From positions 248,001 to 312,000 of IMG/VR virus record IMGVR_UViG_3300042391_000634: a DNA stretch of 64,000 nucleotides. The stretch is one strand, 5' to 3'. Shown here one piece after another: positions 24,157-62,915 of the stretch. Under the pieces are notes generated by a model, which made no database searches, was not told the DNA's origin, and worked only from the letters and a program-made list of their open reading frames with translations. The translations under genes were made by a program, and so were the position numbers. How positions within the stretch are numbered: position 1 is the first letter of the stretch; every line of letters begins with the position of its first letter.

Positions 24157-25332
24157 ATGAAAGTAGGATTTATTGGAATTGGTAAATTAGGTAAAGAGGC
24201 CGCAGAGGTAATGCACGATGCGGGACATGATGTAACGGGTTATGATATTCAATCAGTAACCGATACTAAATTTAAAATGGTGACATCATTAAAAGATGTT
24301 TGTCAAGATAAAGAATTAATTTTTATAGCGGTGCCAACACCACACGACCCCGCGTATGATGGTAGTCAACCAATGGCTCAATTACCACCAAAAGATTTTG
24401 ACTATACAATTGTACAGGGAATTTTAAATGAACTAAATGATTATACAAATAAATCACAATTAGTTGTATTAATATCGACTGTTTTACCTGGCACAACAAG
24501 AAGAGAGTTTTATCCGTTGGTTAGAAATTATCGATTTATTTATAACCCATATCTTATAGCAATGGGAACAGTTAAAGAAGATATGATAAAACCTGAAATG
24601 ATTATAATTGGTACTGAAGATGGAACAACTACGGGAGACGCAAACAAACTAACTGAGTTTTACGAAACCTTTGTGTATCCAAAAACAAGATGTGAAATTG
24701 GAACTTGGGATGACGCCGAAGGAATTAAAATATTTTATAATACATTTATTTCTGCAAAATTAACATTGGTTAATATGATACAGGATATTGCAGAGAAAAA
24801 TGGAAATATGAATACAGATATTGTTACCGGTGCATTAGAAAGAAGTACACAAAGAATCACAGGACCGGCATATATGAAAGCGGGAATGGGTGACGGAGGT
24901 TCATGTCACCCAAGAGATAATATTGCATTAAGATATCTTTCAGAAAGATTTGGTTTAGGTTATGATTTATTTGACTCAATTATGAAAACAAGAGAGGTTC
25001 AAGCAAAGAATTTAGCCGATAAATTAGTTAGACAAGCAAGACAACATAATTTACCAATTATTATTATGGGTAAAAGTTATAAACCGGGTGTTGAATTTAC
25101 AGAAGGTTCATATTCAGTATTAGTTGGTTATTACGTTAATTTTACATATAAAGAAAATGTTGATTTTGATAAAATAGAAACACCAGCAGTTTATTTATTA
25201 GGACATAGAGGAATTTTTAACGAGACAATATTCCCTGAAGGTAGTATTGTTGTGGATCCATGGAGAGAAAGAAAATTAAACGACACAATTTATTATGGAG
25301 GAAAAAAACAAGATACTAAATCTTTGTTATGA
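24157..25332 (+). CDS. UDP-glucose/GDP-mannose dehydrogenase family
   Basis: 'GFIGIGKLG','AVPTP','STVLPGT','YNP','K..YNTF','GGSCHPRD'. Confidence 0.9.
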   Translation: MKVGFIGIGKLGKEAAEVMHDAGHDVTGYDIQSVTDTKFKMVTSLKDVCQDKELIFIAVPTPHDPAYDGSQPMAQLPPKDFDYTIVQGILNELNDYTNKSQLVVLISTVLPGTTRREFYPLVRNYRFIYNPYLIAMGTVKEDMIKPEMIIIGTEDGTTTGDANKLTEFYETFVYPKTRCEIGTWDDAEGIKIFYNTFISAKLTLVNMIQDIAEKNGNMNTDIVTGALERSTQRITGPAYMKAGMGDGGSCHPRDNIALRYLSERFGLGYDLFDSIMKTREVQAKNLADKLVRQARQHNLPIIIMGKSYKPGVEFTEGSYSVLVGYYVNFTYKENVDFDKIETPAVYLLGHRGIFNETIFPEGSIVVDPWRERKLNDTIYYGGKKQDTKSLL

Positions 25333-26593
25333 TAGATGGGATAGTGAAACCAATACCTTCAAATATAATGGAGGAGACAAATTCACATTTAATTTCCAAC
25401 ATCTATTATTACATTTTCAAATAGAAACAAAGGAACAAAATAAATTTGAAATTAAATCACACAATTTAAGTGAAGTTTATTTTAGGCCCGATTTAAATTT
25501 TTATTACCCAATCGCACACGGTAATATTGATATAATAAATTTATTTGTTGAAAATGAAGAAAAGGAAACAGAAAAATTTGAAAAGTCACCTTTAAGTGAT
25601 GAAGTTATTGAATGTTTAAAAAAATGTAAAAATCTTAAAGTGATTATAGTGACTGAACATGAACCAGATTATGAAACTGGATTTGTTAGGTTATTAGAAT
25701 ATCTCGAATTAAAAAAATTAGACCCAAAACAATTTTATGTTATTAATAATAATGAAAGATTAAATGATTTAAAGAAAAAATATAACAGTGAAATAAATGT
25801 ACATACGTTACATTTTATTGCACATTCATCTAATTTTTCATTAACAAATGCTGGAGGATGTAATTGGATTGATGATAAGGAAGGTAAAATGTTTATGTGT
25901 TTTAATAAAACACCAAAACATCATAGATATGCTTTATTGTGTTTTTTAAAAAAACAAGGATTATTAGAAAAAATTAATTGGTCGTTGGTACCACCATACG
26001 ATTGTTTTCCGATTGGACATTACTATGATAAAATCTTTACTAAAGAACAAAAGGAATATTTTAAGGATGAAATAATTTATTTTAATGAACTTAAGTTCAA
26101 AAGAAGTGACATGGAAGAAGATAAAAATTGGTTTAATTTATTTAATGAACCTAATACCGAAGGTTTCCCGTCGTGGATGAGAATACCTGAGTTCGGTATG
26201 AATTATGAAAATTCATATATTAATATTGTTACTGAATCTAAATTTTTTGATGATTTATTTGTTACCCATATTAGTGAGAAATCATATAGACCATTTTTCT
26301 ATTATCAATTACCAATGATATTGGCAACTCAATATCATATTAAAACAATGAAAGAGAAATATAATTTTGATTTCTTTGATGACATCATAAATCACTCTTA
26401 TGATAATGAACCAAATCAAATGAGAAGATTAGAGATGTTTGTTGAAGAAATTAAAAGATTAGATGGAATACAAGACCAAGTTAAAGAGTTCTATAAGAAC
26501 AATAAACAAAGATTTGAAGACAATAAACAAAAGGTATGGAACATGTTGAATATTGTTGAAAAAGATTATCAATTTTTTGAAAGTTTAATATAA
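25295..26593 (+). CDS. Putative GT-B glycosyltransferase, GT10-like paralog 5
   Basis: 'MCFNKTPKHHR','NIVTES..HISEKSYRPF','NHSYD'. Confidence 0.5.
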   Translation: MEEKNKILNLCYDRWDSETNTFKYNGGDKFTFNFQHLLLHFQIETKEQNKFEIKSHNLSEVYFRPDLNFYYPIAHGNIDIINLFVENEEKETEKFEKSPLSDEVIECLKKCKNLKVIIVTEHEPDYETGFVRLLEYLELKKLDPKQFYVINNNERLNDLKKKYNSEINVHTLHFIAHSSNFSLTNAGGCNWIDDKEGKMFMCFNKTPKHHRYALLCFLKKQGLLEKINWSLVPPYDCFPIGHYYDKIFTKEQKEYFKDEIIYFNELKFKRSDMEEDKNWFNLFNEPNTEGFPSWMRIPEFGMNYENSYINIVTESKFFDDLFVTHISEKSYRPFFYYQLPMILATQYHIKTMKEKYNFDFFDDIINHSYDNEPNQMRRLEMFVEEIKRLDGIQDQVKEFYKNNKQRFEDNKQKVWNMLNIVEKDYQFFESLI

Positions 26594-31214: not shown

Positions 31215-31649
31215 ATGATATATTGGTTAACAGGACAACCCGGATCAGGTAAAACAACATTAGCATCATGGATACAGGCGAGTTTCCCAATTAAATCTAT
31301 GATAGTAGATGGGGACGATATCCGTGAGATATTTGTAAATAAAGATTATAGTGAGGAAGGTAGACGTAAAAATATAGAAAAGGCTCAGATTTTGGCTAAA
31401 TTCTTACACCATAAAGGGTATACTGTTATTGTATCGTTAGTTTCACCTTATAGAGATCAAAGAGAACAATTTAAGATTGAAATGGGGGATGATTTGATTG
31501 AAATTTATGTTCATACCACAAATATTAGAGGTAGAGAACAATTTCATGTTAATTATGAGGAACCCCAAACCTTTTTTATTGATTGTGATACAACGGATAG
31601 TTCCGAATATAACACATTTATGGAATTAAGAAGAAAATTAAAAATATAG
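31215..31649 (+). CDS. cysC: Adenylylsulfate (APS) kinase
   Basis: 'WLTGQPGSGKTT','DGDDIR','YSEEGR..NI','VSPY...R','YEEP'. Confidence 0.85.
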   Translation: MIYWLTGQPGSGKTTLASWIQASFPIKSMIVDGDDIREIFVNKDYSEEGRRKNIEKAQILAKFLHHKGYTVIVSLVSPYRDQREQFKIEMGDDLIEIYVHTTNIRGREQFHVNYEEPQTFFIDCDTTDSSEYNTFMELRRKLKI

Positions 31650-32036: not shown

Positions 32037-32252
32037 ATGATAGTAGAACGTAAACGACATATAGCCAAAACCATTTCATATCGTATTGTGAGCACCCTAA
32101 TTGGATTTTTACTAATGTGGTTGATAAGTGGGTCGATTAAGGTCGGAGCGGCGTTTGGGTTAGCTGAATTAATTTATAAACCAATTCAATATTATGTTCA
32201 TGAAAGAATTTGGTATAAATTGATAAAATTTGGATTAAAAGATAAAAAATAA
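32037..32252 (+). CDS. DUF2061-like small membrane protein
   Basis: 'RHIAKTISYR..ST','YYVHERIW'. Confidence 0.8.
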   Translation: MIVERKRHIAKTISYRIVSTLIGFLLMWLISGSIKVGAAFGLAELIYKPIQYYVHERIWYKLIKFGLKDKK

Positions 32253-32279: not shown

Positions 32280-33770
32280 ATGAGAACAGTATTGATAGGT
32301 TCGGACTTTATGTACGACAAAGATGGTAATTTAAAACCAATTGAAATAAATACATCAGTAGGTTGGGATGGTGCCGAAAAAGTAGAAGATGATGTAGATT
32401 GTTTAGATTTAACAAATTTATATCAATTTGTTGAGAATAACAATTTTCAAAATGTACATTATATTGGAAACATTGGTTTTTTTCACAAAACATTAGAAAC
32501 ACACTATAGTGGAAGTTCAGTTACATATGAATTTCATAGTGTTAGTGCAACTGCCATTACTATACCATATATCGAAGATACAACCGATGTATTAATTATT
32601 AGAAGTGCATATGATACGACCGCATTAGTAGATGATACATATTGTAGAGATAAAATTGAATTTCTTAAATTAATTAAAGATTCTTCATTTAGTTCTCAAT
32701 TTGTGTATAAAGATGAAACCAATACATTGGTTTCAAATATTACATCTATAAATGATAACGGTGAACATCCTAATTTTATACTTAAATCAATATTACCAAA
32801 TTACGATATATCATTATACCCAAAATATTTTAAAGTAACGAATCAATCGGAATTAGATACTATTATTGCAAATAATGTTACTACCAATTATTTCTTAATG
32901 GAATATTTGTATAATCCAACTAAAATTTGGGGGGGACATCTGACAGTAATAAGAAGTTTAAATTTATTAGTTCCACCAAATTTAGAATCAATTCAACTTG
33001 GACAATATACAAAATTAAATCAAAATATGTTATTGACAGGTGTAACATATAATCTAACCACATTAGAAGTTGATGCAGATTTTAGATCTAGTTATAGTAC
33101 ACTTCCAATAATAGACAATGTTCCTAAATTGTTAGATGCAGACATGGTAGAAATGGCGGATGGTTCATTTAAAACTGCGTTGGATTTACAAGTTGGTGAT
33201 AGTATTAAAACAATTGAAATTCCAAATCCGGCTGGAACTAGTATAGATAGTTATATATCATCCGAATTTGGTCTTACATATGAAACCTTATTAACTGATA
33301 CAATATACACAACCAATGTCATTACCAATAAACAAAAAGTAAACACTTTAACTTTTATACGTGAATTAGTATTTGACGATAATAGTACGTGGGAAGATAC
33401 ATCCGCTTCACGTTATTTGATAGATAGAGCGGGTGTGGTTATGTTTAAATCTTTATTTGGAATATTTGCAGGAGATGTAGTTTTATTGTTAGATACTACC
33501 GATGAGAATATAAATTTTGTAAGAAAAACTGTTGTATCAAATACTGAATTTAAAAGAGTTTTTTCTGGATGGTTTATTTCAGTTGAGAATGCAAAATTAT
33601 TCTTAACTAAAACTCCGGGTTCAACTAATAACGAATCATTTGTTTCAATTGAACATAATAGAGCTCCTTGTCCTACCTATGCATGTAATAGTGGATGTGG
33701 ATATTATTGTCCGTCTTGTCCAAAAAATCAATCATGTGCACCGGACAATGAGTGTTCACCAATTTGTTAA
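32280..33770 (+). CDS. Circularly permuted ATP-grasp domain + Hint-like domain + C-terminal Cys-rich peptide
   Basis: 'GSDFM..DG.LKPIEINT','HPNFILK','YFLMEYL'; Hint 'V.MADGSFK...LQVGD.I' and terminal HN (aa 459-460); 36-aa tail with 8 Cys. Confidence 0.7.
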   Translation: MRTVLIGSDFMYDKDGNLKPIEINTSVGWDGAEKVEDDVDCLDLTNLYQFVENNNFQNVHYIGNIGFFHKTLETHYSGSSVTYEFHSVSATAITIPYIEDTTDVLIIRSAYDTTALVDDTYCRDKIEFLKLIKDSSFSSQFVYKDETNTLVSNITSINDNGEHPNFILKSILPNYDISLYPKYFKVTNQSELDTIIANNVTTNYFLMEYLYNPTKIWGGHLTVIRSLNLLVPPNLESIQLGQYTKLNQNMLLTGVTYNLTTLEVDADFRSSYSTLPIIDNVPKLLDADMVEMADGSFKTALDLQVGDSIKTIEIPNPAGTSIDSYISSEFGLTYETLLTDTIYTTNVITNKQKVNTLTFIRELVFDDNSTWEDTSASRYLIDRAGVVMFKSLFGIFAGDVVLLLDTTDENINFVRKTVVSNTEFKRVFSGWFISVENAKLFLTKTPGSTNNESFVSIEHNRAPCPTYACNSGCGYYCPSCPKNQSCAPDNECSPIC

Positions 33771-33798: not shown

Positions 33799-33888
33799 AT
33801 GGCAATCATAATATCAAATACCGATATCAATACTTTAAATACCACAATGACAACAATTGGTAGTTTAATAGTAACCGCAAACTCATAA
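33799..33888 (+). CDS. 29-aa Thr/Ser/Asn-rich peptide; not in ORF track
   Basis: MAIIISNTDINTLNTTMTTIGSLIVTANS; A-rich leader (AAAAT repeats) before ATG; fills gap in operon. Confidence 0.6.
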   Translation: MAIIISNTDINTLNTTMTTIGSLIVTANS

Positions 33889-33920: not shown

Positions 33921-34451
33921 ATGATACACCTTATAAAAGGTATATTAACAAAAGAAGAATGTAACATTCTTAAAAACCAGTTTGATATTGATAAACAAAT
34001 CAATCCATCACTAGATAAATCAAAGGTTACAGGTAACACCTATGGGTATGAACCTTCTTATATTTTCAATGAATATTTAGATAAACTTAAATCATCTGTT
34101 TTAAAACTTAATTATAAAATAGATGATTTAAGAAATGTCAATTCATATATCAGAGAATACAAAAATAATGATTTTTTAAAAAAACATAGAGATAGAGACG
34201 ATATTAGTGTTACTATGTCGATATGTGTAGAATCAACAATAAATAAAGTTTGGCCATTAAATGCTGAAATTGATGATATAGAATATTCTTTTAACACAAA
34301 TGTAGGCGATGCTATTGTGTTATTTGATGCGGATAAAATATATCATTGGAGAGATATTTTAATTTGTAATCAAAATGAAAGAGTAATACAATTCTTTTTA
34401 CATTGGACACCCATTATACAGATTACCAAAAAAATAAAAACAATAATATAA
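33921..34451 (+). CDS. 2OG-Fe(II) oxygenase
   Basis: 'LTKEEC','R.Y....L.KHRD','ISVT','GDA','HWR','Q.FLHW'. Confidence 0.8.
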   Translation: MIHLIKGILTKEECNILKNQFDIDKQINPSLDKSKVTGNTYGYEPSYIFNEYLDKLKSSVLKLNYKIDDLRNVNSYIREYKNNDFLKKHRDRDDISVTMSICVESTINKVWPLNAEIDDIEYSFNTNVGDAIVLFDADKIYHWRDILICNQNERVIQFFLHWTPIIQITKKIKTII

Positions 34452-34996
34452 TGAATTATAATTTTAAATATTATGGCCAAGTAGATGTATCTAATATCGA
34501 TAATTTAATTGTAAATACCCAATTAAATTGGGATGAATACACATATAGACAAACCGATAGATATGGTCAATCCGATACTAAAACAATACCATTATTATGG
34601 TCTGAAGATTTTGTTGAAAATATAACTTGGAAATCTTATGAAATTTTTAAAGATAGTTTAATTGAAATAGAAAATAATTTAATCAATTTATTGGGAGAAG
34701 GTAAAATTGAAGTTGCACTATTAATTAATTTACCAAAAAATAAAAAAATATTACCACACATAGATTCTGGATATGAACATTTTTTTAAAACTAAAAGAAT
34801 ACATATACCAATTACAACAAATGATAAATGTAACTTTATGGTTGGTGAAGAAATTGTACAAATGAAACTAGGTGAAATATGGGAAATTGATAATGCAAAT
34901 AAAGTACATGGTGTTAATAATGATGGGAATACTGATAGAATTCATTTATTAATAGACTATCAAATTTCTGACAAAAAAATAAAAACATTATTATAA
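34451..34996 (+). CDS. Aspartyl/asparaginyl beta-hydroxylase-like oxygenase
   Basis: 'ILPHID','RIHIPITTN','GEIWEIDN..VHGVNN.G.TDRIHLLID'; ATG 34451 overlaps upstream TAA. Confidence 0.85.
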   Translation: MNYNFKYYGQVDVSNIDNLIVNTQLNWDEYTYRQTDRYGQSDTKTIPLLWSEDFVENITWKSYEIFKDSLIEIENNLINLLGEGKIEVALLINLPKNKKILPHIDSGYEHFFKTKRIHIPITTNDKCNFMVGEEIVQMKLGEIWEIDNANKVHGVNNDGNTDRIHLLIDYQISDKKIKTLL

Positions 34997-35009
34997 ACAA
35001 AAATAAATT

Positions 35010-35591
35010 ATGGCATTTACATATACAATAGTTCCTGAATTTTTAACAAAAGAAGAATGTAATATAATATTAAATTTTTCATTAAAAGAATTAAAATTAG
35101 AACCATCTCAAATTGTTACTCATTATATGGGTGGTAATGTTGATACCGATATAAGGAAGTCAAATCAAGTATTTTTTCCATATTATAAAGAATTTCCATT
35201 TTTATTAGAAAAAATGAGTAAATTGTTAAATAAACATATTGACGTTAAAGGATTTGATTTGGATTATGAACATAGTCAATTTCAATTTACAGAGTATAAT
35301 TCAGGTGACCATTTTGGTTGGCATAGAGATGTAATTGGTGAAAAAATTACAAATTATGATAGATATTGTTCGTTAGTGATACAATTAAATGATGAATATG
35401 AAGAAGGTGATTTACAAATAAAAGATATAGAAGATAAAACATTAACAGTTGAAAAAGGTGTTGGCAATTTAATATTATTTTTATCTAATATTGAACATAG
35501 AGTAGTGCCAGTAAAAAGTGGAGTTAGATACACATTAGTTAATTGGGTAAAATTAATGGAAAAAAAAGATTATAAAAAAACATTATTATGA
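35010..35591 (+). CDS. 2OG-Fe(II) oxygenase (PKHD/prolyl-hydroxylase-like)
   Basis: 'QFTEY..GDHFGWHRD','QLNDEYEEGDL','F.S..EHRV.PV.SG.RYTLV.W'. Confidence 0.9.
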   Translation: MAFTYTIVPEFLTKEECNIILNFSLKELKLEPSQIVTHYMGGNVDTDIRKSNQVFFPYYKEFPFLLEKMSKLLNKHIDVKGFDLDYEHSQFQFTEYNSGDHFGWHRDVIGEKITNYDRYCSLVIQLNDEYEEGDLQIKDIEDKTLTVEKGVGNLILFLSNIEHRVVPVKSGVRYTLVNWVKLMEKKDYKKTLL

Positions 35592-35592
35592 T

Positions 35593-35904
35593 ATGAAATT
35601 AGATTTTAAAGAAATATTCACAGCTTGGTATAATGTTGTAAATCATACTCCTGAACAAAGGGAGTTGGCAGATAAAAGATTTGCAATATGTTTAGAATGT
35701 CCATCTAAAAAAGAAATATTAGAAGGTAAAGAATGGTCTTTAAAATGTGGAGAATGTGGTTGCCCATTAAAGGCGAAAGTTTATACAAAAAAAACATATA
35801 ACAATAAAGATGGTTCATGTCCACTTAATAAATGGAAAGAAATTGAAATAGAATATATAAGTAATGTCAAAACCAATTATAAAACCAAAAAAACAATTAT
35901 ATAA
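35593..35904 (+). CDS. Small Cys-rich metal-binding protein (DUF6171-like)
   Basis: 'R.AICLECP','CGECGC.L.AK','CPL.KW'. Confidence 0.6.
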   Translation: MKLDFKEIFTAWYNVVNHTPEQRELADKRFAICLECPSKKEILEGKEWSLKCGECGCPLKAKVYTKKTYNNKDGSCPLNKWKEIEIEYISNVKTNYKTKKTII

Positions 35905-35906
35905 CA

Positions 35907-36596
35907 ATGTCGTACTTAATAAACGATAATCTTATATGGATAATTACACCCAAATGTGCTAGCAATTCAATAGAAACAGCCCTATTAAATTCAAATTTAA
36001 AGTTAAAAACGTATAACGATACGTTAGATCCAAAATCACATATACATATACCTTTAAATGATTCATTAAATTATTTTGGTAATAAAGAAACTGTATGCAT
36101 TACCAGAGATTGGTTTGGAAAATGGTTAAGTGCATTGAATTTTATTTGGGACATAATTGAATTTTATTGGGGGTTTACACCTATTTGTAAATGGGAAGAT
36201 ATTGATAATGATTTCATATATAATACATTCGATACGGAATTTTTGAATCATTTACATTGGATAAATGATGAGGGATATGAAAAATGTATAATTAAATTAT
36301 TAAAAATTAATCAGGACGAAATTAATAACATACCAAAAAATTTACCACCAGTAGTTATGGTTTTAATTTCTGAAAAATACTATAAAAGTAATCAAAAATG
36401 TACGTATGAATTTGATATTAAAGAGTTAGATAAATTTGTTAAATTTATTGAAGATAGGTTTGGTGAAAAAATACAATTAGATAATTTAAACACATCGACG
36501 AAAAGACCAAATAAAATAATAATAAACGATGAGTTAAAATCTTTTGTTTGGGAAAAATTTGAAAAACCATTTGAAAAACGAAATCAATTAATTTAA
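35907..36596 (+). CDS. Sulfotransferase family 2-like protein
   Basis: 5'-PSB-like 'ITPKCASNSI' and 3'-PB-like 'TRDW...WLS'. Confidence 0.65.
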   Translation: MSYLINDNLIWIITPKCASNSIETALLNSNLKLKTYNDTLDPKSHIHIPLNDSLNYFGNKETVCITRDWFGKWLSALNFIWDIIEFYWGFTPICKWEDIDNDFIYNTFDTEFLNHLHWINDEGYEKCIIKLLKINQDEINNIPKNLPPVVMVLISEKYYKSNQKCTYEFDIKELDKFVKFIEDRFGEKIQLDNLNTSTKRPNKIIINDELKSFVWEKFEKPFEKRNQLI

Positions 36597-36597
36597 T

Positions 36598-37266
36598 ATG
36601 GCAACTCTTTGGACATTTGGAGATTCGTTTACTGCAGGTGATGGTTGTGTGCAAAATATAGCAATTAGGGATGGTGATTTTAAATATTATAATGAATATA
36701 AACAATCGGATAGTGATATATGGTCAAATATATTAAGTAAAACTATTGGATTTGAAGTAAAAAATATGGGAAAAAGTGGAGCAAGTAATGATTATATTTT
36801 AGATTCTATTATTGACAATTTTGATATGATAGAACCAAATGATGTGGTTATAATTGAAAAAACATTTTACCAAAGATTTGATATTCCTAAATCTGGTGGT
36901 GATATATTCCAAACAATTTATGCTGAGGGCATCTACCAACTTTCTATTGATTTAAAAATGAACAGATACTTTTGTGAAGATAAATTAGAAAGTGAAACAA
37001 TATTAAATTATGGTGTTTTATTTGCTGGTCATAAATTATTTAAACAAAGACACGATAAACGATTTAAATTTATAAAAACCCAATTGAATAACAAAGGAAA
37101 CAAAATATTAATGTGGGACGTATTGGATGTTTTAAATGGTAAATTTGAAACAATATCGGAACATACAAAAGGTAAAATAAAAGATTATCATTTTAGTTTT
37201 AATGGTCACAAAACATTTAGTGAACTTTTATTTAAAAAATTATACACCAAACCCGAATTAATTTAA
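36598..37266 (+). CDS. SGNH-like protein
   Basis: 'WTFGDSFTAG','GKSGASN','DYHFSFNGH'. Confidence 0.65.
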   Translation: MATLWTFGDSFTAGDGCVQNIAIRDGDFKYYNEYKQSDSDIWSNILSKTIGFEVKNMGKSGASNDYILDSIIDNFDMIEPNDVVIIEKTFYQRFDIPKSGGDIFQTIYAEGIYQLSIDLKMNRYFCEDKLESETILNYGVLFAGHKLFKQRHDKRFKFIKTQLNNKGNKILMWDVLDVLNGKFETISEHTKGKIKDYHFSFNGHKTFSELLFKKLYTKPELI

Positions 37267-38319
37267 ATGAACAATCAAGTTGAGTTAAAGAATTATTTTT
37301 GTAGTGTACCATTTACATCATTAGAAATACATAATAATGTTTGTTTTGTTTGTTGTCCATCTTGGTTACCAAACAAAGTGGAACTTAGTGAAATTCCTTT
37401 AAAAGATGTTTACAATAGTGAACCAATTATAGATATTAGAAATTCTATTTTAGACGGTTCGTTTAAATATTGTAGTAAAGAGCTTTGTCCTTATTTAAGT
37501 AAATTAGTAAACTTTGGAGTAACATCAGGACCCGTTACATTAAAATCACATTCAAATATTAATAGCCCTATTATAGAAAATAATACACCGAATGATTTAA
37601 TAATGAATTTTGACAGGACTTGTAATTACAAATGTCCATCATGTAGAGTAGATTTAATTGTTGAAAATAGTGAAGGAATACAAAGAGTTGAAAAAACAAT
37701 TGAAGATATTGACACATATTATTCAAAATATGTAAAAACTTTGTATATAACAGGATCAGGCGACCCATTTGTTTCAGTTGGATTTAGAAATTATCTAAGA
37801 AATTTTAATCCTAAAAAATACCCAAATTTATCATCAATACATTTTCACACCAACGCATCTATGTGGAATAAAGAAATGTGGGATAGTATGCCAAATGTAC
37901 ATAAATATGTTCATACGTGTGAAATTAGTATAGATGCCGGCACCAAAGATACTTACGAAAATAAAACGAGATTAGGTGGTAATTGGGAAAACTTATTAAA
38001 TAATTTAAAATTTATTAGCACTTTACCACATATGAATGTAAAAACGTCATTTGTTGTTCAAGATACAAATTATACTGAAATGGAAACCTTTTATAATTTA
38101 ATGTATTCTATATTTGGCAAAAGAGTAAATGTATTTTTTGGTAAGATAACTAATTGGGGAACATTTTCTGACGGTGAATTTAAATTAAAACAGGTATGGG
38201 ATACCGAACATCCAGAACACATGTTATTTAAAAAAGAATTTAATAAAATATGGAAAAATCAAAACCTTTTTCATAACTTATATGAATTCATAGACAATAC
38301 ACATACATCGTTGATATGA
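37267..38319 (+). CDS. Radical SAM protein with N-terminal SPASM/twitch-like Cys cluster
   Basis: 'CSVPF','VCCPSW','C...CP'; CNYKCPSC; 'GSGDPF','TNA','ISIDA'. Confidence 0.85.
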   Translation: MNNQVELKNYFCSVPFTSLEIHNNVCFVCCPSWLPNKVELSEIPLKDVYNSEPIIDIRNSILDGSFKYCSKELCPYLSKLVNFGVTSGPVTLKSHSNINSPIIENNTPNDLIMNFDRTCNYKCPSCRVDLIVENSEGIQRVEKTIEDIDTYYSKYVKTLYITGSGDPFVSVGFRNYLRNFNPKKYPNLSSIHFHTNASMWNKEMWDSMPNVHKYVHTCEISIDAGTKDTYENKTRLGGNWENLLNNLKFISTLPHMNVKTSFVVQDTNYTEMETFYNLMYSIFGKRVNVFFGKITNWGTFSDGEFKLKQVWDTEHPEHMLFKKEFNKIWKNQNLFHNLYEFIDNTHTSLI

Positions 38320-38336
38320 TAGTGAAATAAAAAATA

Positions 38337-39467
38337 ATGGAAGATAATATTTTAAATAAAAAAATAAATATAAATTTTATAGACGGACCTTTTGTTAAAA
38401 TAATAGAAGATACTACATTACATTATAAAATTGAATTTATTGATAGAGATGACAATAAAATTATTTTTGAAATAGATTTAATAAGTAATAAATGGGCCAA
38501 ATGTTCAAAAAAATACTTTGTAAATTGGTTAATTAAAATAAAAGGTATTGATAATGATTTTTATTATGAACATACTTTTGATTTAAACAAAAAAAGAGTT
38601 TTTGTTTTTTTAGAATCACACTTACTTGGAGATACCTTAGCTTGGATTGATCAAGTCGATAGATTTAGAATAAAAAATAAATGTGAGGTGATATGTGCAA
38701 CATCCCATAATAATATCTTCAAAGAACAATACCCCAATATTCAATTTACATCACCTACTTTACCTAAATCAAATGAGTCTGATTTTTATGCACTATATCG
38801 ATTAGGGGTTTGGCGTATTAATGATGTAATCGATATGGATAGACATAAAATTGATCCAAGAAAATTACCATTAATACAAGTTGGTTCTGATATTTTAGGA
38901 ATTAATTATAAAGAAACAAAACCAAAATTAGCAAACTTAGGTAAAACAAAACAAAAACTAGTTACAATAGGATTTCACGGTGGAGGACAATTTAAATATT
39001 GGAATAACCCGACAGGATGGCAAGAAGTTGTGAATTTTTTAAATTTAGAAGGATATGAGGTTAGATTATTATCAAATGAAGAAGATGGTTATATGGGTAA
39101 TCGGCCACCAAATGGTATAACTAAACAACCAAATGGACCATTAAGTGAAATAATTAAAGTTTTACAAGAATCTGTTTTATTTATCGGTATTAGTAGTGGT
39201 TTAAGTTGGTTATCTTGGGCGGCTGGAACACCAACAATAATAATATCGGGATTTACAGATATTCATTTAGAACCAATAAATGGAATAACAAGAATCATTA
39301 ATAAAGATGTATGTAATAGTTGTTGGTCTAAATATGAATTTAAACCTCATAATTGGTATTGGTGTCCTGTTTATGCCGGTACTGAAAATAGATTTGAGTG
39401 TTCTAAATCAATAACTGGTGAAGTGGTAATTAAAAAAGTAAAAAATTTAATTAATAATTTATCATGA
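38337..39467 (+). CDS. TibC/Aah-like protein O-glycosyl(heptosyl)transferase
   Basis: 'LGDTLAW','KYWNNPTGW.EVV','FIG.SSGLSWL.WA','ISGFT', iron-finger-like 'CNSCW..WCP..FEC'. Confidence 0.75.
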   Translation: MEDNILNKKININFIDGPFVKIIEDTTLHYKIEFIDRDDNKIIFEIDLISNKWAKCSKKYFVNWLIKIKGIDNDFYYEHTFDLNKKRVFVFLESHLLGDTLAWIDQVDRFRIKNKCEVICATSHNNIFKEQYPNIQFTSPTLPKSNESDFYALYRLGVWRINDVIDMDRHKIDPRKLPLIQVGSDILGINYKETKPKLANLGKTKQKLVTIGFHGGGQFKYWNNPTGWQEVVNFLNLEGYEVRLLSNEEDGYMGNRPPNGITKQPNGPLSEIIKVLQESVLFIGISSGLSWLSWAAGTPTIIISGFTDIHLEPINGITRIINKDVCNSCWSKYEFKPHNWYWCPVYAGTENRFECSKSITGEVVIKKVKNLINNLS

Positions 39468-39757
39468 TTTTAAAAGAAAAAATATTATTTAGTAAAGAGG
39501 AGTGTCAATCCATTATTTTTTATGGGGGCAATAATATTACAAATTGGGATATTAAAGATAGAAAATATCATTCACAGCCAATTACATATTCGTTGGGAAA
39601 CAAATGGTTATTTGATAAACTTAAAAAATTTTTTGAAGAACAACTAAACGCTCAAATAAAAAAAAATAAAGAAGTTATTCATTTTCATAAATTTGTAAAA
39701 GGTGATTGGTTTTTAGAAAACGAACATATAAAAATAGAAACAAATAAATTAATATGA
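39464..39757 (+). pseudogene. Internally deleted 2OG-Fe(II) oxygenase
   Basis: N-terminal 'LFSKEEC' and 'FHKFVKGDWF' then jumps to C-tail; HxD and distal His absent. Confidence 0.6.
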
Positions 39758-40557
39758 AACCATTAAAATATTGGAAAAATGACACATTTGAAATATCATC
39801 ATATCAATATAAATTGGAAGATAGGGTAAATAAAAAATATCCCACATCTGGTTCGGATAATAGTGGTAAATGTCTTTATACTTACAATGAACTTGGTTTT
39901 AGAGGTGATAGTATTAAGAAACAAGGGTTTAAAGTAATGTCATTAGGTTGTTCAGTTACCGAAGGTGTTGGTGTAAATGACAATCAAACGTGGTCATCAC
40001 AATTTGTAAATTTATTAACTAATGGGGTTGATATGAATTTTGGTACAGGAGGTAGAAGTAATGACTTTATTTCGAGATGCTTATTATCATATTATGATAT
40101 CATAAAACCAGATTTAGTTTTAGTTATGTATACTTCACCAACTAGAAGAGAATATTATACCGAAAATAATGGAGTTGAACCATTTGTGGTTGGTAGTAAA
40201 TGGGGTTGGTATGAACACCAAGAAGATGGTAGAAAGGCACATAAAATGTTATTTGAATTACAAAATGATAATGAAGATTTTATCAATTGGTATAAAAATC
40301 ATTTATTAATTAAATATTTTTTAGAGTCTAAAGGTTGTAATTGGTTATGGAATGGTTGGTTTGACATACCAAAAGAATATGAAGAATTTAATAGATTTGA
40401 TGGTGGTTATGAAAGATTTTTAGATTTAGGTGTAGATAATGGGCATCCAGGTCCAAACCACAATAAAACCTATGCACACAAACTACATGATTTTATAACA
40501 AAAAATTTCCCAAACTACATAAATAATTTACCGAAAAATAAGCAAAATTTGATTTGA
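39754..40557 (+). CDS. SGNH-like protein
   Basis: 'YNELGFRG','LGCSVTEGVG','G.GGRSND.I','D.GHPGP'. Confidence 0.6.
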   Translation: MKPLKYWKNDTFEISSYQYKLEDRVNKKYPTSGSDNSGKCLYTYNELGFRGDSIKKQGFKVMSLGCSVTEGVGVNDNQTWSSQFVNLLTNGVDMNFGTGGRSNDFISRCLLSYYDIIKPDLVLVMYTSPTRREYYTENNGVEPFVVGSKWGWYEHQEDGRKAHKMLFELQNDNEDFINWYKNHLLIKYFLESKGCNWLWNGWFDIPKEYEEFNRFDGGYERFLDLGVDNGHPGPNHNKTYAHKLHDFITKNFPNYINNLPKNKQNLI

Positions 40558-40587: not shown

Positions 40588-43323
40588 ATGAAAATACTTG
40601 CACACACATGTTTTATTGGAGTCACAGGATATGCTAATCACGCAAAGTCCTTTTTTTGTGCTCTGAACAAACACCACACCGTAAAAGTTAGAAATTCAAC
40701 CATAGGTGGTGGTTGGAAGGGAATGAATAACACCCCGCATGATAATGAACCTTACATCACAGATGAGATGAAGGATATGTTAATTCTTCAAACTCTTAAT
40801 AATTCGGACGGTAGTAGGTCGGATTACCCAATCTACGGATATAGCGGTGATTATAATACAGACGTTAATATTGTTTTGGTAGATACAAACAACCATTATT
40901 TCTATGACAATTATGTGGGGTATAATATTGCATATAACGTTTGGGAATCAACACGTTATCCCGATAATTTCTTTAAAAGATTACATTACTTTGACGAGGT
41001 ATGGGTACCAACACAATGGCAATTTGATTGTTTGGTTGAACAGGGTTATCCATCACATAAAATATCGATAGTCCCTGAGGGAGTTGATGTGGATACATTT
41101 AAACCGTTAACTAAGACACCAAAGAAGGACAAATTTAGGTTTTTACACTTTGGTAGATGGGATTATAGAAAAGGAACAACAGAGGTTTTAAGAGCGTTTA
41201 GTGAGACATTTAAAGATAGGGACGATGTGGAGTTAATTGCATCAGTTGAAAACCCTTATCCATTTGACGGACTTAAAACAACTGAAGATAGGGTTAAACA
41301 TCACAATATAGACACAACGAACATTAAATTTATAAAATTCACACCACAGGAAGAATATGTAAAATATTTGCAAGAGGGTGATGTGTTTGTTTCATGTGCT
41401 AGAAGTGAAGGTTGGAACTTACCTTTAATTGAGGCAATGGCATGTGGAACACCTTCAATTTATTCCGATTGGGGGGGACAATTACAATTTGCAGAAGGTA
41501 AAGGTGTACCAGTTGGAATTAAAGGATTGAGACCTGCAAATATTGAGCATAAAGAATGGCCAGGTGAATATTGTGAACCAGATTGGGATGATTTGAAGTG
41601 GAAGATGAGACAGGCGTACGATTATAACACGGCAATGTGGGTAAAGGCCGTTAGTGACGCAAAAGATATTCATGAAAAATTTAATTGGGATACGGTTGCA
41701 AAGGGAGCATGTGATATATTGGAAAGAAATAAAAAACCATTTGCGTTTGTAACTACCGGTAACTTAGGATACATGCCGGTGATTGAAAAGTTAGTTCAAT
41801 CATTATTAGAATTTTCTAAACGTAAGATTATAGTATATGGTATTGATTGTGAGGTTCCATTTGATTATCCAAATATTATTAAAAGAACGATAACAACACA
41901 AAAGATATCTGAACATGATAAATGGTATTGGAAACAAATGGCATGTATTGAATCCGTTAATGAAGGGTTTGATAACTATGTTTGGATGGATGGTGATGTT
42001 GTCGTTAATTACAACGTAGATAATATCAAATCTTATTTCAAAGAGATTGAAAACTATCCAATATCCGATATACATGTTCAAGAAGAATTCTTTGGTTGGT
42101 ATGATGATGGAACTAAATCACAATTATTTAATGAACGAGTTGCTGAAGATTGGGGAGTTCAAAAACAACAACCATATATGCATGTATGTATGTATGTTTA
42201 TAATAAAGAATGTAAATGGTGGTTTGAAGAGATCCTTAATCATTATGTGGAAGTAATGAAAGATGGTGGTAAAGACTACAAACGTTTATACCTATGGAAT
42301 GATGAAGGTATTGATAATGCAATGAGATGGAAATACAACTTTAAAAAACATTTACCACTATCTAATTTTGACACATCATCTTATGATGGTGATGACGGAA
42401 TGACAAATGAGACACAACATCATTTCTTAAAGTTTTGGAATGAAGAAGGACCACAAAATTTCAATAGAATATTTGGATATCAAGCAATACCAAAAGATAA
42501 GAATCAAATTCTTTATTTCCACGGTAATAAGAATGCACAGATGTCCGATTTTATGATGGACTTTATTAAGATGAAACGTGATAATAGTTTTTACAAATCA
42601 GAACAATTTTATACATCGTTAGATGTTAACACATATAAGTTAGAGAACTTAGGTGACATCAAAGATGTACCGGGAGGTACTATGGAAATTGCAGATAAGT
42701 ATGGATGGGCAAGAGCAATCTACCATGAAATTTTTAATTTACATGATTACTATAAAGGTGGTAATGAAAGAAGAATAAATGAAGGTGATATTGTGGTGGA
42801 CTTAGGTGGTAACATGGGTATCTTCAATAGGTGGGCATATCATCAAGGTGCGAGTAAAGTAATCTCATTTGAACCAGATAGACGATATTTTAAATTACTG
42901 TCACTTAACGCTGACCCACGTTCAGTATTATTCAACGCAGCCGCGGCACATGAAATTGGAGAATTGAATTTATATGAGAGTAGTCACTTAGGTGGGTCAA
43001 ATGTTTTTGGTGTTGAAGGTCAAGAAGGATATAGTGTTAAAACATATACTTTAAACTATCTTTTTGAAAGTGGTTTAATTGACCATATCGATTTTCTTAA
43101 GGTTGATATTGAAGGAGCAGAACATGCTGCATTTGCTGGTATCAGTGATGAGAACTTACAAAAAGTTAAAACCATCGCAATGGAATATCATCATAGTCAT
43201 TTTGAATACGATGAAGAATTAAGAACAAATTTTATAAATAAAATGAATGGATTAGGGTTCAATTCATATCTATTATTTATGGGTAATAATAACAGTTTAC
43301 AAATGATATATTTTTGGAAATGA
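40588..43323 (+). CDS. Fusion: GT4 glycosyltransferase + GT-A-like domain + FkbM methyltransferase
   Basis: 'GRWDYRKG','SEGWNLPLIEAMACG'; 'WMDGD','NDE','FHG.K'; 'VVDLGGNMG','FEP','LKVDIEGAE'. Confidence 0.85.
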   Translation: MKILAHTCFIGVTGYANHAKSFFCALNKHHTVKVRNSTIGGGWKGMNNTPHDNEPYITDEMKDMLILQTLNNSDGSRSDYPIYGYSGDYNTDVNIVLVDTNNHYFYDNYVGYNIAYNVWESTRYPDNFFKRLHYFDEVWVPTQWQFDCLVEQGYPSHKISIVPEGVDVDTFKPLTKTPKKDKFRFLHFGRWDYRKGTTEVLRAFSETFKDRDDVELIASVENPYPFDGLKTTEDRVKHHNIDTTNIKFIKFTPQEEYVKYLQEGDVFVSCARSEGWNLPLIEAMACGTPSIYSDWGGQLQFAEGKGVPVGIKGLRPANIEHKEWPGEYCEPDWDDLKWKMRQAYDYNTAMWVKAVSDAKDIHEKFNWDTVAKGACDILERNKKPFAFVTTGNLGYMPVIEKLVQSLLEFSKRKIIVYGIDCEVPFDYPNIIKRTITTQKISEHDKWYWKQMACIESVNEGFDNYVWMDGDVVVNYNVDNIKSYFKEIENYPISDIHVQEEFFGWYDDGTKSQLFNERVAEDWGVQKQQPYMHVCMYVYNKECKWWFEEILNHYVEVMKDGGKDYKRLYLWNDEGIDNAMRWKYNFKKHLPLSNFDTSSYDGDDGMTNETQHHFLKFWNEEGPQNFNRIFGYQAIPKDKNQILYFHGNKNAQMSDFMMDFIKMKRDNSFYKSEQFYTSLDVNTYKLENLGDIKDVPGGTMEIADKYGWARAIYHEIFNLHDYYKGGNERRINEGDIVVDLGGNMGIFNRWAYHQGASKVISFEPDRRYFKLLSLNADPRSVLFNAAAAHEIGELNLYESSHLGGSNVFGVEGQEGYSVKTYTLNYLFESGLIDHIDFLKVDIEGAEHAAFAGISDENLQKVKTIAMEYHHSHFEYDEELRTNFINKMNGLGFNSYLLFMGNNNSLQMIYFWK

Positions 43324-50728: not shown

Positions 50729-51352
50729 CTACACTTTTTTATTGTTAAATTTATTAAATTTCTTACAAATCGTTAATCCATGTCTATATGGAAACGATTC
50801 ATTATGGTCTTTTGGTTTTGTACCTAAGTCAATAACTTGATATCCAATATCAAAAAAATGATTAGACAAATCTCTTTCATCTGGTTGATGAATCCATCCA
50901 ACACCATTATAAAATGAATGACTGGTTGTTTTTTGATAATGTAAATTAGTATCGTGTAAAACCAAGACCGTATCATCGTCTATTATACCACATTCCACCA
51001 TGTTATTAAAAAAAGATAAGGAATAATTATAGTTATGACAATCAAAAAATACCATATCAACTCTATCTTTAATATCGTCTTTAACCACTCGTTCTACAGA
51101 TTTAATAATTGTTATATGATTAGGTGAAATTGGGGTTAGGTTAGTAATATCAATAGTATAAACAGTACCATCTGTGCCGACTGATTCTAAAAAGTTTTTT
51201 GCGGAATAACCATGAAGTCCCCCCACCTCAATTATTCTTTTAAAAACGCATGTTTTTATTATTGAAAATAAAACCAATGCTTCGTCGTCTTGAATTGGCC
51301 CTAAAACCATTTGACTAGGTTCTTGTGTAAGATGTTCTAAATTATATTTCAT
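50729..51352 (-). CDS. Class I SAM methyltransferase (Methyltransf_24-like)
   Basis: 'IEVGG..GYSA','VYTID','FFDC','LHDT'. Confidence 0.7.
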   Translation of the reverse strand: MKYNLEHLTQEPSQMVLGPIQDDEALVLFSIIKTCVFKRIIEVGGLHGYSAKNFLESVGTDGTVYTIDITNLTPISPNHITIIKSVERVVKDDIKDRVDMVFFDCHNYNYSLSFFNNMVECGIIDDDTVLVLHDTNLHYQKTTSHSFYNGVGWIHQPDERDLSNHFFDIGYQVIDLGTKPKDHNESFPYRHGLTICKKFNKFNNKKV

Positions 51353-51380
51353 TTCATTTCATTTCATTTTATTTTATTTT
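51346..51380. repeat. Microsatellite (ATTTC)4(ATTTT)3 spanning a stop/start junction
   Basis: Direct reading; on the minus strand gives tandem ATGAA units. Confidence 0.8.
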
Positions 51381-51965
51381 ATTATTAAAAACGTAAAACA
51401 TCATCCTCTCAAATTCCCAAGGAGATTGTTCTCTTTCTTCAGTTATTTTTTTACACTTCTCATAAAAAGAAATGTCTCTCATTCTTATTTGTTCTTTAGT
51501 CACACAAAATAAACAACCGGCAACAAACGGATATTCACCAATTGGAGGTGATGTAAATAATGATGACCATAATGTGTTGATGTTTAATACTGGTACGTGG
51601 TGAGGTAGACCGTTTGATTGACTTACCAATTTTTCTTTAAACACACCATTACTAAAAAAATGACAATCATCGATATTCAATTTACTATAACCTAATGAAT
51701 TAGGAAAAACATCTAATATCCAATCATAATTCTTAACGTGGTCAAATGGTTCAGCTTGAGTAAAGAAAACCCAATCAGATAAATTATTGTAATTAGTCAC
51801 GATGTGATGAAAATATGTGTGCATCTCCCTACCAACATTATCTAATTTAATAGTGTTTAAAATTTCAACATTTGATTTATTGTAAATGATAATTTTATAA
51901 TCCTTTACTTTATTTAACCAATTTAAATTTTCTTTATAGTATGATACAACTAATTCTTTTGTCAT
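51369..51965 (-). CDS. DUF3431-like protein
   Basis: 'VVS.Y.E.L.W','N.GRE.HTY.HI..NY..L','F.Q..PFDH','F.V..E.I','FER'. Confidence 0.75.
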   Translation of the reverse strand: MTKELVVSYYKENLNWLNKVKDYKIIIYNKSNVEILNTIKLDNVGREMHTYFHHIVTNYNNLSDWVFFTQAEPFDHVKNYDWILDVFPNSLGYSKLNIDDCHFFSNGVFKEKLVSQSNGLPHHVPVLNINTLWSSLFTSPPIGEYPFVAGCLFCVTKEQIRMRDISFYEKCKKITEEREQSPWEFERMMFYVFNNKIK

Positions 51966-55167: not shown

Positions 55168-55168
55168 A

Positions 55169-62282: not shown

Positions 62283-62915
62283 ATGAATACATTATGGACA
62301 TTTGGAGATAGTTTAACCGATGGATTTAGATCTAATGATACGTGGGCAAAAACGTATGTTGATTGGAAAGGTTATATTCCATTAACATATGGTGAAATTA
62401 TATCTAAAGAATTAAATTACGAATTAATTAATTTAGGTAAGGGTGGTTCAGACAACAACCTAATATTTGAATCATTTATTAAAAACATAGATAATATTAA
62501 AGATGGAGATATTGTAATAATAGGTTGGTCTGATATTGGTAGATTTAGATTAGCCACCAAATTAAATACATGGATATCATTTGTTCCTAATTTTAACAAT
62601 AACCTGACAAATATGGAAAACATTAGTAACCAAACAATAATGGAAGTATTTGTTAATAGGTTATCTGATGTCTATACCGATGAGGTCAATATATGGATTA
62701 ATTTTATTAAAAAAACCATAAAAAATTTTAAAATTATTAATTGGTCAACATTTAATCAAGGTAAAATAAATGGTATTTATGTTAATGAAATTGAGAGAAT
62801 TATAGATGAAACCAATGGACTTATAAAAGACGCACATTTTAGTGAAAGGGGTCAAAAACAGTTATCTGAAATTTTATTAAATAAAATAAATGGTAATTAT
62901 AACAAAATAATATAA
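62283..62915 (+). CDS. SGNH-like protein
   Basis: 'WTFGDSLT.G','NLGKGGSDN','GWS..R','DAHFSERG'. Confidence 0.65.
   Translation: MNTLWTFGDSLTDGFRSNDTWAKTYVDWKGYIPLTYGEIISKELNYELINLGKGGSDNNLIFESFIKNIDNIKDGDIVIIGWSDIGRFRLATKLNTWISFVPNFNNNLTNMENISNQTIMEVFVNRLSDVYTDEVNIWINFIKKTIKNFKIINWSTFNQGKINGIYVNEIERIIDETNGLIKDAHFSERGQKQLSEILLNKINGNYNKII

Follow-up and report, generated by a model that had tools for sequence, protein, structure and literature searches.

In a group of uncultured giant freshwater phages, about twenty unrelated enzyme families encoded next to one unusual, predicted ligase/self-cleaving gene end in the same four-residue tail (Lys/Asn, Thr/Ser, Leu, Ile), which is tentatively interpreted as a handle that would bring these enzymes to a common partner. 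The starting point was a 64,000-nucleotide stretch (here, the window; positions 248,001 to 312,000 of IMG/VR record IMGVR_UViG_3300042391_000634), in which 18 of 70 ORFs end in [LI][LI] against 2.5% expected, including 9 of 10 consecutive genes at 33921-40557. The observation made in the preliminary description, namely that 9 of 10 consecutive ORFs and 18 of about 70 overall share this type of ending, is real and proved stronger than originally stated. In about 150 related viral loci the gene families are bimodal, with 20 families of unrelated folds carrying the ending in at least 80% of their members and 38 carrying it in at most 10%, and the family-weighted consensus is [K/N]-[T/S/K/N]-L-I-COOH. 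No description of such a tail was found in the literature searched.

All nine endings in the 33921-40557 array were confirmed, the one exception being the GT9 gene at 38337-39467, which ends NNLS. The statistics were computed on a greedy ORF call that gave 17 of 69 ORFs ending in [LI][LI], leaving out the ORF at 24157-25332 (ending DTKSLL), with which the count of 18 of about 70 is correct. By taking into account the internal [LI][LI] dipeptide frequency in the same ORFs (2.47%), probabilities of 8e-13 for 17 of 69 and of 3e-14 for 9 of 10 were obtained, while exact LI ends 8 ORFs against an internal frequency of 0.64% (P = 2e-8). The controls for AT bias and gene overlap, which had been proposed in the preliminary description, did not account for the enrichment. 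Among ORFs whose last two codons contain only A or T, 14 of 29 end in [LI][LI], against 13.4% of internal all-AT dicodons, and across 161 loci the ending occurs in every junction class (56% with ATGA overlaps, 24% with gaps over 30 nt, 18% with no downstream gene on the same strand). Furthermore, only 1 of 35 ORFs in the 27 kb of the same contig outside the window has the ending, and 0 of 31 in a 31%-GC, 735-kb phage.

Selection is found to act on the protein. Leu codon usage in the tail is close to that of the gene body (at position −2, TTA 0.705 against 0.660), all three stop codons follow the tail and the downstream sequence is variable. In the family-weighted logo, positions −2 and −1 carry 2.4 and 2.2 bits, respectively, with Leu in 73% at −2 and Ile 66%, Leu 22% and Val 7% at −1. 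Thr and Ser total 48% at −3 (Lys 19%, Asn 14%), and Lys is enriched at −4, −6 and −7. Phe, Val and Met are rare at the terminal pair, which suggests a shaped pocket.

The array and its surroundings, all on the plus strand, may be described in order. Upstream lie an APS kinase gene (31215..31649; Pfam APS_kinase, E 4e-19), part of the conserved upstream context of the module, and a DUF2061 small membrane protein (32037..32252; Pfam, E 9e-17), directly upstream of the gene here named the hub. Both lack the tail, as do all 27 and all 33 members of their respective families. The hub gene (32280..33770, 496 aa, 'family 4') encodes an ATP-grasp-like domain (residues 1 to about 280), a Hint domain (about 283-460) and a Cys-rich end (461-496), as judged from an AlphaFold2 model (pLDDT 83.8), and none of its 63 family members carries the tail. 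The Hint fold was supported by Foldseek matches to BIL2, DnaB inteins and hedgehog (E 6e-7 to 1e-5; TM on the target 0.67-0.77), and clade D relatives score 2e-33 for Pfam Intein_splicing and 9e-20 for Hint. The N-terminal domain matches yeast, plant and nematode glutathione synthetases (E 8e-5 to 6e-4), but the match is weak, with TM of only 0.25-0.28 and no ATP-grasp above the Pfam threshold (RimK, E 0.085). Eukaryotic glutathione synthetase is a circularly permuted ATP-grasp enzyme. Residues E22, N24, K169 and R225, which may contribute to Mg/ATP binding, are invariant.

The putative Hint C-terminal cleavage dyad, His459-Asn460 (33654..33659), is invariant in 37 sequences down to 21% identity. 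At Hint position 1, however, Lys283 or Leu284 is found rather than Cys, Ser or Thr, and no TxxH block was seen on reading the alignment, so that the domain is not a splicing intein and only C-terminal cleavage is plausible. The 36 residues that follow (33660..33767), the predicted released product, are hypervariable and Cys-rich (6-8 Cys, of which only C464, C480 and C486 are conserved or nearly so), with a pLDDT below 50. In the gap after the hub gene, the 29-aa ORF mentioned in the preliminary description (33799..33888) is a real, conserved gene. It has an internal G-[S/N]-L-I and ends N-S, and an ORF of 24-49 aa with a conserved C-terminal half is present at the same place in all 70+ distinct loci.

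The first tailed gene (33921..34451, 176 aa, no Pfam match) ends KKIKTII, and 22 of 22 members of its family have the tail. It is followed by an Asp/Asn beta-hydroxylase-type 2OG oxygenase (34451..34996; PF05118, E 4e-12) ending KKIKTLL, in which the domain stops at residue 170 of 181 (4 of 4 family members tailed), and by a 2OG-Fe(II) oxygenase (35010..35591; PF13640, domain end at residue 180 of 193) ending YKKTLL. Orthologues of the latter use CTT, CTC, CTA, TTG and TTA codons in the tail, whereas its cyanophage homologues lack it. The fourth (35593..35904, 'family 6') is a small Cys-rich protein ending TKKTII and the commonest +1 partner of the hub. The linker between its invariant Trp and the C-terminus varies from 15 to 27 residues while the motif stays at the extreme C-terminus, the tail has a pLDDT of about 45-53, and 117 of its best 120 database relatives end in a hydrophobic pair. 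The fifth (35907..36596, 229 aa, no Pfam match) ends KRNQLI, as part of a family with 65 of 66 members tailed. Its description as 'sulfotransferase-like' rests on a PK-x-A/G-S motif read by eye, and was not supported by Pfam. A GDSL/SGNH hydrolase (36598..37266; PF00657) ends TKPELI, with 20 of 21 family members ending in a hydrophobic pair, and a radical SAM enzyme (37267..38319; PF04055) ends THTSLI, with 79 of 83 family members tailed, while distant relatives stop at the end of the fold (...HNFHHLL). After the untailed GT9 glycosyltransferase, whose family is mixed, the ORF at 39464..39757 ends ETNKLI. The preliminary description had taken it for a deleted oxygenase retaining the tail, and this is confirmed, since it is an oxygenase-like gene of 97 aa with an in-frame loss of about 69 residues from a 165-167-aa gene, and keeps the last 14 residues. 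The last tailed gene (39754..40557, 267 aa, with weak similarity to the SGNH paralogues) ends NKQNLI. Its family is mixed (44 of 73), some orthologues ending about 10 residues earlier without the tail. A GT4 + FkbM methyltransferase fusion (40588..43323; Pfam), without the tail in this gene and in all 17 members of its family, marks the downstream end of the tailed array.

Nine further endings had been listed outside the array. Among those that could be judged, the ending is conserved in orthologues for 25295..26593 (family 11, 432 aa, unknown function, ending FESLI; 6 of 9), for the SGNH paralogue at 62283..62915 (ending YNKII, with a Pfam GDSL match below threshold; 13 of 17 ending in a hydrophobic pair) and for 21016 (3 of 4), but not for 13988 (0 of 2).

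New here is the association of the tailed genes with the phage-specific hub gene. In 72 hub-centred loci, 67-75% of the genes at offsets +1 to +4 carry the tail and none do beyond offset 15 on either side, and this holds for 77 distinct hub genes ranging from 22% to 100% identity. In one locus (L075) 8 of 9 ORFs carry the tail and the only exception is the hub. In one genome a second, dispersed hub copy (L120), the minimal module, is followed by two tailed ORFs in an otherwise tail-free region, family 6 being the only recognisable tailed family there. Gene content of the arrays varies widely between relatives while the tail is constant.

The ending is a short linear motif on a flexible tail, which marks the members of one phage-specific biosynthetic module. 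It is proposed, tentatively, that it is a docking peptide, whose free carboxylate and two aliphatic side chains would fit a pocket on a partner encoded in the same module, most likely the ATP-grasp/Hint protein, possibly acting with the 29-aa micro-protein. The resemblance of the hub N-terminal domain to glutathione synthetase, an enzyme that binds a peptide's C-terminal carboxylate, is in line with this view. Docking would bring a variable, plug-in set of tailoring enzymes (2OG oxygenases, radical SAM, SGNH hydrolases, putative sulfotransferases and a small Cys-rich protein) to one scaffold or substrate, and the scaffold would then cut itself at His459-Asn460 and release the hypervariable Cys-rich peptide. 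This would invert the usual logic of RiPPs (ribosomally made, post-translationally modified peptides), because the handle would sit on the enzymes and the receptor on the precursor. The motif, the selection on the protein, its anchoring at the C-terminus, its restriction to the module and the predicted folds of the hub rest on the data, whereas binding, the identity of the receptor, self-cleavage and the role of the peptide as substrate are inferred. It should also be considered that the motif is the same in all hub clades and does not co-vary with them, which a conserved host reader would explain equally well, that some tailed genes (25295, 62283, 21016) lie 10-30 kb from the hub while some genes inside the arrays lack the tail, and that only 91 of the 335 kb of the genome were inspected, so that another reader could be encoded elsewhere. 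The interpretation given in the preliminary description was partly supported, in that the ending is a genuine protein-level tag added beyond the catalytic fold of unrelated enzymes, conserved in orthologues, absent from outside homologues and tied to the neighbouring gene at 32280, while sorting, docking, turnover and ligation, among which it did not choose, are inferred functions.

Among the alternatives, a degron is possible but unlikely. In this view, the basic stretch followed by two aliphatic residues at a free, disordered C-terminus would be read by a host or phage AAA+ protease (ClpXP, FtsH or Lon), making the tailoring enzymes short-lived or degraded at a set time in infection. In outline the tail resembles the six-residue tag RRKKAI of phage Mu transposase, which E. 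coli ClpXP recognizes, three to six terminal residues being enough for such tags (PMC5143411), and its identity across hub clades would be expected if the reader is a conserved host machine. However, a degron does not explain why tailed genes are confined to the neighbourhood of one gene, nor why a dispersed hub copy brings tailed neighbours with it, and Ala, typical of ClpX tags, is not among the residues seen at the last two positions.

Somewhat less likely is that the tail is a ligation substrate, the ATP-grasp domain of the hub activating the terminal Ile carboxylate of each tailed protein as an acyl phosphate and joining it to an amine (the N-terminus of the Hint-released peptide, a Lys side chain or a small amine), so that the enzymes would be tagged or tethered covalently. 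The glutathione-synthetase-like fold predicted for the N-terminal domain, its invariant putative Mg/ATP residues (E22-x-N24, K169 and R225), the anchoring of the motif at the extreme C-terminus, which fits recognition of a free carboxylate, and the proximity of hub and tailed genes favour this possibility, and ATP-grasp ligases acting on protein C-termini exist, such as LysX acting on LysW (PMC12998189). On the other hand, dozens of different substrates for one ligase would be unusual, no product can be predicted, and the tail is basic and aliphatic, unlike the acidic ends of LysW, S6 and tubulin.

A peripheral membrane anchor, by which the lysines and the aliphatic pair would hold the enzymes at the inner face of the cytoplasmic membrane, where lipid-linked glycans are built, is doubtful. 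Tailed families are tailoring enzymes, while enzymes of soluble nucleotide-sugar metabolism lack the tail, and Lys is enriched before the pair, but two aliphatic residues next to a charged carboxylate make a weak anchor, the near-exclusion of Phe, Trp, Val and Met and the preference for the order Leu-Ile argue for a specific pocket, and the tails are not amphipathic helices. Equally doubtful is a cargo-loading signal that would bind the inside of the procapsid or another virion part, as encapsulin cargo peptides and scaffolding-protein C-termini do. The tail is indeed a short C-terminal peptide shared by unrelated proteins in a tailed phage with a T4-type lineage signal, but no capsid gene is linked to the arrays, the motif is unlike the Gly-Ser-Leu-type encapsulin peptides and there is no clear reason to package Fe-S and 2OG enzymes. 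Finally, a by-product of nucleotide-level constraints (AT-rich composition, stop/start overlaps or a conserved inter-cistronic DNA or RNA signal) might be suggested by the 26-31% GC content, the tight packing of genes and the skew of Ile at −1 towards ATA (0.65 against 0.46), but is contradicted by the codon, junction and composition controls described above.

Comparison with known systems is instructive. ClpX C-terminal recognition tags are likewise three- to six-residue signals at a free, unstructured C-terminus, and the Mu transposase type, a loosely defined class of which RRKKAI is the one example cited, has basic residues followed by non-polar ones on a phage protein (PMC5143411); here Lys is enriched at −4, −6 and −7, followed by Leu-Ile, a resemblance in outline. 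The present tail does not end in Leu-Ala-Ala or Ala-Ala as ssrA-like tags do, and it is shared by about 20 enzyme families that cluster beside one gene. With class I PDZ ligands ([S/T]-x-hydrophobic-COOH) it shares the free carboxylate and the hydrophobic last residue. Thr or Ser lies two residues before the last in only about half of the families, often replaced by Lys or Asn, the penultimate residue, normally free to vary, is the most conserved position, and no PDZ hit appeared among the roughly 80 proteins, from the 91 kb read, that were scanned with Pfam. As with encapsulin cargo-loading peptides and hub-binding tails (SSB C-terminus, clamp-binding motifs), one short terminal peptide would let many unrelated proteins use the same partner, but the sequence differs, there is no shell, clamp or SSB context and the proteins are tailoring enzymes of a biosynthetic island. 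In particular, the tail does not fit the bacterial clamp-binding motif (QL[SD]LF type), since Gln reaches only 4-6% at −4 in per-clade counts and about 6% at −3 in one clade, is absent from the family-weighted top residues, and the hydrophobic residues are adjacent. In the LysW/LysX amino-group carrier system an ATP-grasp ligase is encoded next to a small Cys-rich protein whose flexible C-terminal end is the functional part (PMC12998189), but LysW is an acidic zinc-ribbon protein ending in the Glu used for attachment, the family 6 model finds no PDB match better than E = 2.4 with Foldseek, and here the enzymes carry the tail as well. RiPP clusters and the HINT-released C-terminal modules of polymorphic toxins offer a further parallel, since a variable C-terminal peptide lies next to radical SAM, oxygenase and other tailoring genes, a Hint domain before a variable end suggests self-release, and both the Cys-rich end and the micro-ORF are candidate precursors. 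No protease or exporter was found, nor, without a dedicated search, a RiPP recognition element (RRE). With respect to these systems, the 'leader' would be a 460-residue enzyme and the recognition element would sit on the enzymes rather than on the precursor.

The window covers positions 248,001-312,000 of a 335,630-bp viral contig from a JGI metagenome (3300042391, Ga0453978_0000001), has a GC content of 26-34%, and contains tightly packed genes, often with ATGA or TAATG junctions, and no tRNA genes. That the contig derives from a tailed jumbo phage is indicated by a collagen-repeat protein with an S74 chaperone domain, which matches many tail-fibre PHROGs, by a 95-aa ORF at 54925-55215 (-) that matches only positions 135-194 of the T4 major capsid protein Gp23 profile (E 2e-13) and sits inside a glycosyltransferase operon, and by the nearest homologues of its oxygenase and carbamoyltransferase, which are found in cyano- and pelagi-myophages. 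No isolated phage is close: a megablast search with 15 kb of sequence and tblastn searches with the radical SAM protein and with the hub protein (encoded by gene 32280-33770) gave no match; only distant cyanophage and pelagiphage homologues of the oxygenase and of the carbamoyltransferase were recovered, and these lack the tail. The window is an island of sugar-nucleotide, glycosyltransferase, methyltransferase, radical SAM, oxygenase and PAPS-synthesis genes. It includes two further large radical SAM proteins (6640-9462 and 10229-11683, both on the + strand) of 940 and 484 aa, 35% identical over 466 residues and without the tail, so that the island holds both tailed and untailed radical SAM enzymes. 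NifU-like and IscA-like Fe-S assembly genes and a ferredoxin lie downstream of the window (6798-7530 and 16170-16490 of the retrieved locus L086, contig 315.8-325.5 kb), which fits the large number of radical SAM enzymes in the island. A run of AATGA pentanucleotide repeats is found at a gene junction at about 51340-51368 (-), after the stop of 51369-51965.

The observation made in the preliminary description, namely that nine of ten consecutive ORFs at 33921-40557 share a C-terminal hydrophobic pair, is correct, all nine endings reading as listed there, with the GT9 gene at 38337-39467 as the exception. Our ORF call found 17 of 69 ORFs of the window ending in [LI][LI] but had dropped ORF 24157-25332, which ends DTKSLL, so that the earlier figure of 18 of about 70 stands. 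The same dipeptide occupies 2.47% of internal positions, which gives P = 8e-13 for 17 of 69 and P = 3e-14 for 9 of 10. The controls that had been requested beforehand all fail to explain the enrichment. Among ORFs whose last two codons are pure A/T, 48% end in [LI][LI], against 13.4% of internal all-AT dicodons. The ending is found in every junction class, including 24% of genes followed by a gap of over 30 nt and 18% of those with no downstream gene on the same strand, which rules out an artefact of stop/start overlaps. In the part of the same contig that was read outside the window (91 of 335 kb being read in total) it ends 1 of 35 ORFs, and in a 31%-GC 735-kb phage 0 of 31, so that AT bias was also rejected. 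One of the tailed genes, at 39464-39757 (+), carries an in-frame internal deletion of about 69 residues, between two 'WF' sites, with respect to a 165-167-aa oxygenase-like gene; the deletion removes the catalytic core and keeps both ends. Another shared C-terminal ending, K-[S/Q]-R-F-G-L, is found on paralogous Laminin_G_3 (concanavalin-like) proteins (window 104-574 and 1188-1964, and 6842-9041 of the related locus L087) and is explained by paralogy; two are fused to GT7 galactosyltransferase domains at 3811-6656.

The radical SAM gene retrieved 80 related viral loci at 51-100% identity, and the hub gene about 70 more. By clustering 1,522 ORFs from the 80 radical-SAM-anchored loci plus the window, the ending was found to be bimodal across families: of 65 families with at least four members, 20 have a hydrophobic pair at the end in at least 80% of members, 38 in at most 10%, and 7 are mixed. 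The family-weighted profile is K 43% or N 23% at position -4; T 28%, S 20%, K 19% or N 14% at -3; L 73% at -2; and I 66% at -1, with Lys also enriched at -6 and -7, and F, V and M rare. Tailed families have unrelated folds, including several 2OG-oxygenase subfamilies, radical SAM, GDSL/SGNH, a small Cys-rich protein and several unknowns, for three of which weak sub-threshold Pfam hints suggest sulfotransferase, SET and SDR; several of the family assignments rest on such weak, or absent, Pfam hits. Common descent of the tailed genes was rejected because BLAST finds no similarity between most of them and their Pfam folds differ.

Selection acts on the protein rather than on the nucleotide sequence. 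Orthologous tails use TTA, TTG, CTT, CTC and CTA for Leu and ATA, ATT and ATC for Ile, precede TAA, TAG or TGA, and are followed by unrelated sequence. Leu codon usage at -2 matches that of the gene body (TTA 0.705 against 0.660; TTG 0.135 against 0.133), and only the last Ile shows a mild ATA excess. On these grounds a conserved DNA or RNA signal was rejected. In the small Cys-rich family the distance from the last invariant Trp to the C-terminus ranges from 15 to 27 residues while the terminal K-x-hydrophobic-hydrophobic is kept, and in the AF2 model the tail is the low-confidence part. In the oxygenases the tail lies beyond the Pfam domain ends, and their cyanophage homologues lack it. Among radical SAM cluster representatives about 14 of the top 20 (38-58% identity) have the tail, whereas more distant relatives do not, and some stop exactly where the fold ends. 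The tail is therefore an add-on of about 6-10 residues, recognised as a terminus and kept by selection on the amino acids.

The hub gene at 32280-33770 ('family 4') never has the tail (0 of 63 members) but always has tailed neighbours. In 72 loci centred on it, the fraction of [LI][LI] genes is 67-75% at offsets +1 to +4, 32-57% at +5 to +11 and 6-34% upstream, and is zero beyond offset 15 on either side. The pattern holds for 77 distinct versions of the gene from 22% to 100% identity, and in L075, one of the related loci, 8 of 9 ORFs carry the tail, with the hub as the only exception. One genome (IMGVR_UViG_3300042892_005961, loci L120 and L142) has two copies of the hub gene about 38 kb apart: the main copy has ten tailed neighbours ending in a hydrophobic pair, whereas the second, dispersed copy (L120) is followed by two ORFs ending KTLF in a region that otherwise lacks tails, which hints that paralogues may prefer different last residues. 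No terminator was found after the hub gene, and no co-variation between hub clade and tail sequence was seen. The 14-mer ATTTGGTAATRTCA, absent from the window, occurs once or twice per locus and always on the coding strand in L004, L073, L075, L161 and 16 other related loci. In those inspected (L073, L075 and L161) it directly follows the stop codon of the last tailed gene, and in L073 and L161 it lies about 60 nt before a conserved 213-215-aa gene, so that it may be a promoter or operator.

Pfam sees nothing in the window's copy of the hub, and a profile search against PDB sequences gave only weak intein hits (E about 0.04). The AF2 model (pLDDT 83.8) matches bacterial intein-like and intein domains over residues about 285-460 (E 6e-7) and, over the N-terminal part, eukaryotic glutathione synthetases (E 8e-5 to 6e-4), although with low TM. 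Eukaryotic glutathione synthetase is a circularly permuted ATP-grasp enzyme that activates the C-terminal carboxylate of a dipeptide; the invariant E22-x-N24 at the very N-terminus of the hub and a RimK hit there, which is below threshold, fit such a permutation. The Hint part has no nucleophile at its first position but has an invariant His459-Asn460, followed by a hypervariable stretch of about 36 residues with 6-8 Cys (33660-33767, +, the last 36 codons of the gene), which looks like a self-released variable peptide; C-terminal cleavage releasing it is the plausible, inferred, chemistry. Longer relatives have three canonical Pfam Hint/intein domains, and some relatives carry three such domains in tandem and no Cys-rich end. 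The hub is phage-specific, the only cellular homologue found in the species-representative genome collection being on one 2-kb MAG contig.

Two further partners are constant. A micro-ORF of 24-49 codons lies in the 90-270-nt gap after the hub in every locus (33799-33888, +, 29 codons in the window); its C-terminal half is conserved, contains G-[S/N]-L-I and ends N-S in most clades, and it may be a precursor peptide, a regulator or part of the receptor. The small Cys-rich protein (35593-35904 in the window) is the commonest +1 protein gene and the only recognisable tailed family in the one minimal module (L120), where a second tailed ORF of 206 aa has no Pfam match. It has 678 database relatives, of which 117 of the best 120 end in a hydrophobic pair, and it has no structural match in the PDB.

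The data show a module-specific, C-terminus-anchored peptide whose last two positions are tightly specified, which points to a binding pocket reading a free carboxylate and two aliphatic side chains; the interaction itself, as well as any cleavage, ligation or turnover, is inferred. The proposal of the preliminary description, that the tag recruits enzymes to a common scaffold or compartment, times their turnover or is the carboxylate ligated by the adjacent ATP-grasp, is partly supported. The reading that best explains the synteny, to be held tentatively, is docking of interchangeable tailoring enzymes onto a partner encoded in the module, the predicted ATP-grasp/Hint protein being the most likely one. 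The main independent rival is a degron, which remains possible though doubtful: the lack of co-variation with hub clade fits a conserved host reader, but a degron does not explain the confinement of the tail to the hub's neighbourhood. Ligation of the tail's carboxylate by the putative ATP-grasp domain is a related possibility, and a somewhat less likely one. A membrane anchor, a packaging signal and nucleotide-level explanations rank lower.

A bolder hypothesis, unlikely on present evidence, is that of a phage-specific 'inverted RiPP' assembly line, in which a 460-residue ATP-grasp/Hint protein would serve at once as scaffold, ligase and self-cleaving leader for the hypervariable Cys-rich peptide. 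Any enzyme acquiring the four-residue tail K-T-L-I-COOH would be plugged into the line, by docking or by ATP-dependent ligation of its carboxylate, which would explain the rapid turnover of tailoring genes between related phages. The tag gives a simple sequence rule for listing the members of one functional module across hundreds of uncultured huge-phage contigs, and links them to a hub of unusual architecture and to a hypervariable peptide that may be the product. It also makes accessible to experiment the question of what the many 2OG oxygenases and radical SAM genes in phage hypervariable regions do, and with what partner. If the tail is sufficient for recruitment, it could also be useful as a four-residue tag for building enzyme assemblies.

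Literature searches, covering open-access papers and preprints only, found no description of the tag or of the ATP-grasp/Hint architecture in phages. With respect to individual systems, LysX/LysW is a precedent in kind for ligation (PMC12998189), but membership of that system fails, since the small Cys-rich partner has no match to a LysW-like fold. The Mu transposase tag RRKKAI, read by ClpXP, resembles the present tail in outline (PMC5143411). More generally, while none was found described for the accessory enzyme islands of phages, whose function is largely unknown, shared terminal peptides that plug unrelated proteins into one partner are known for degradation tags, clamp binders and encapsulin cargo.
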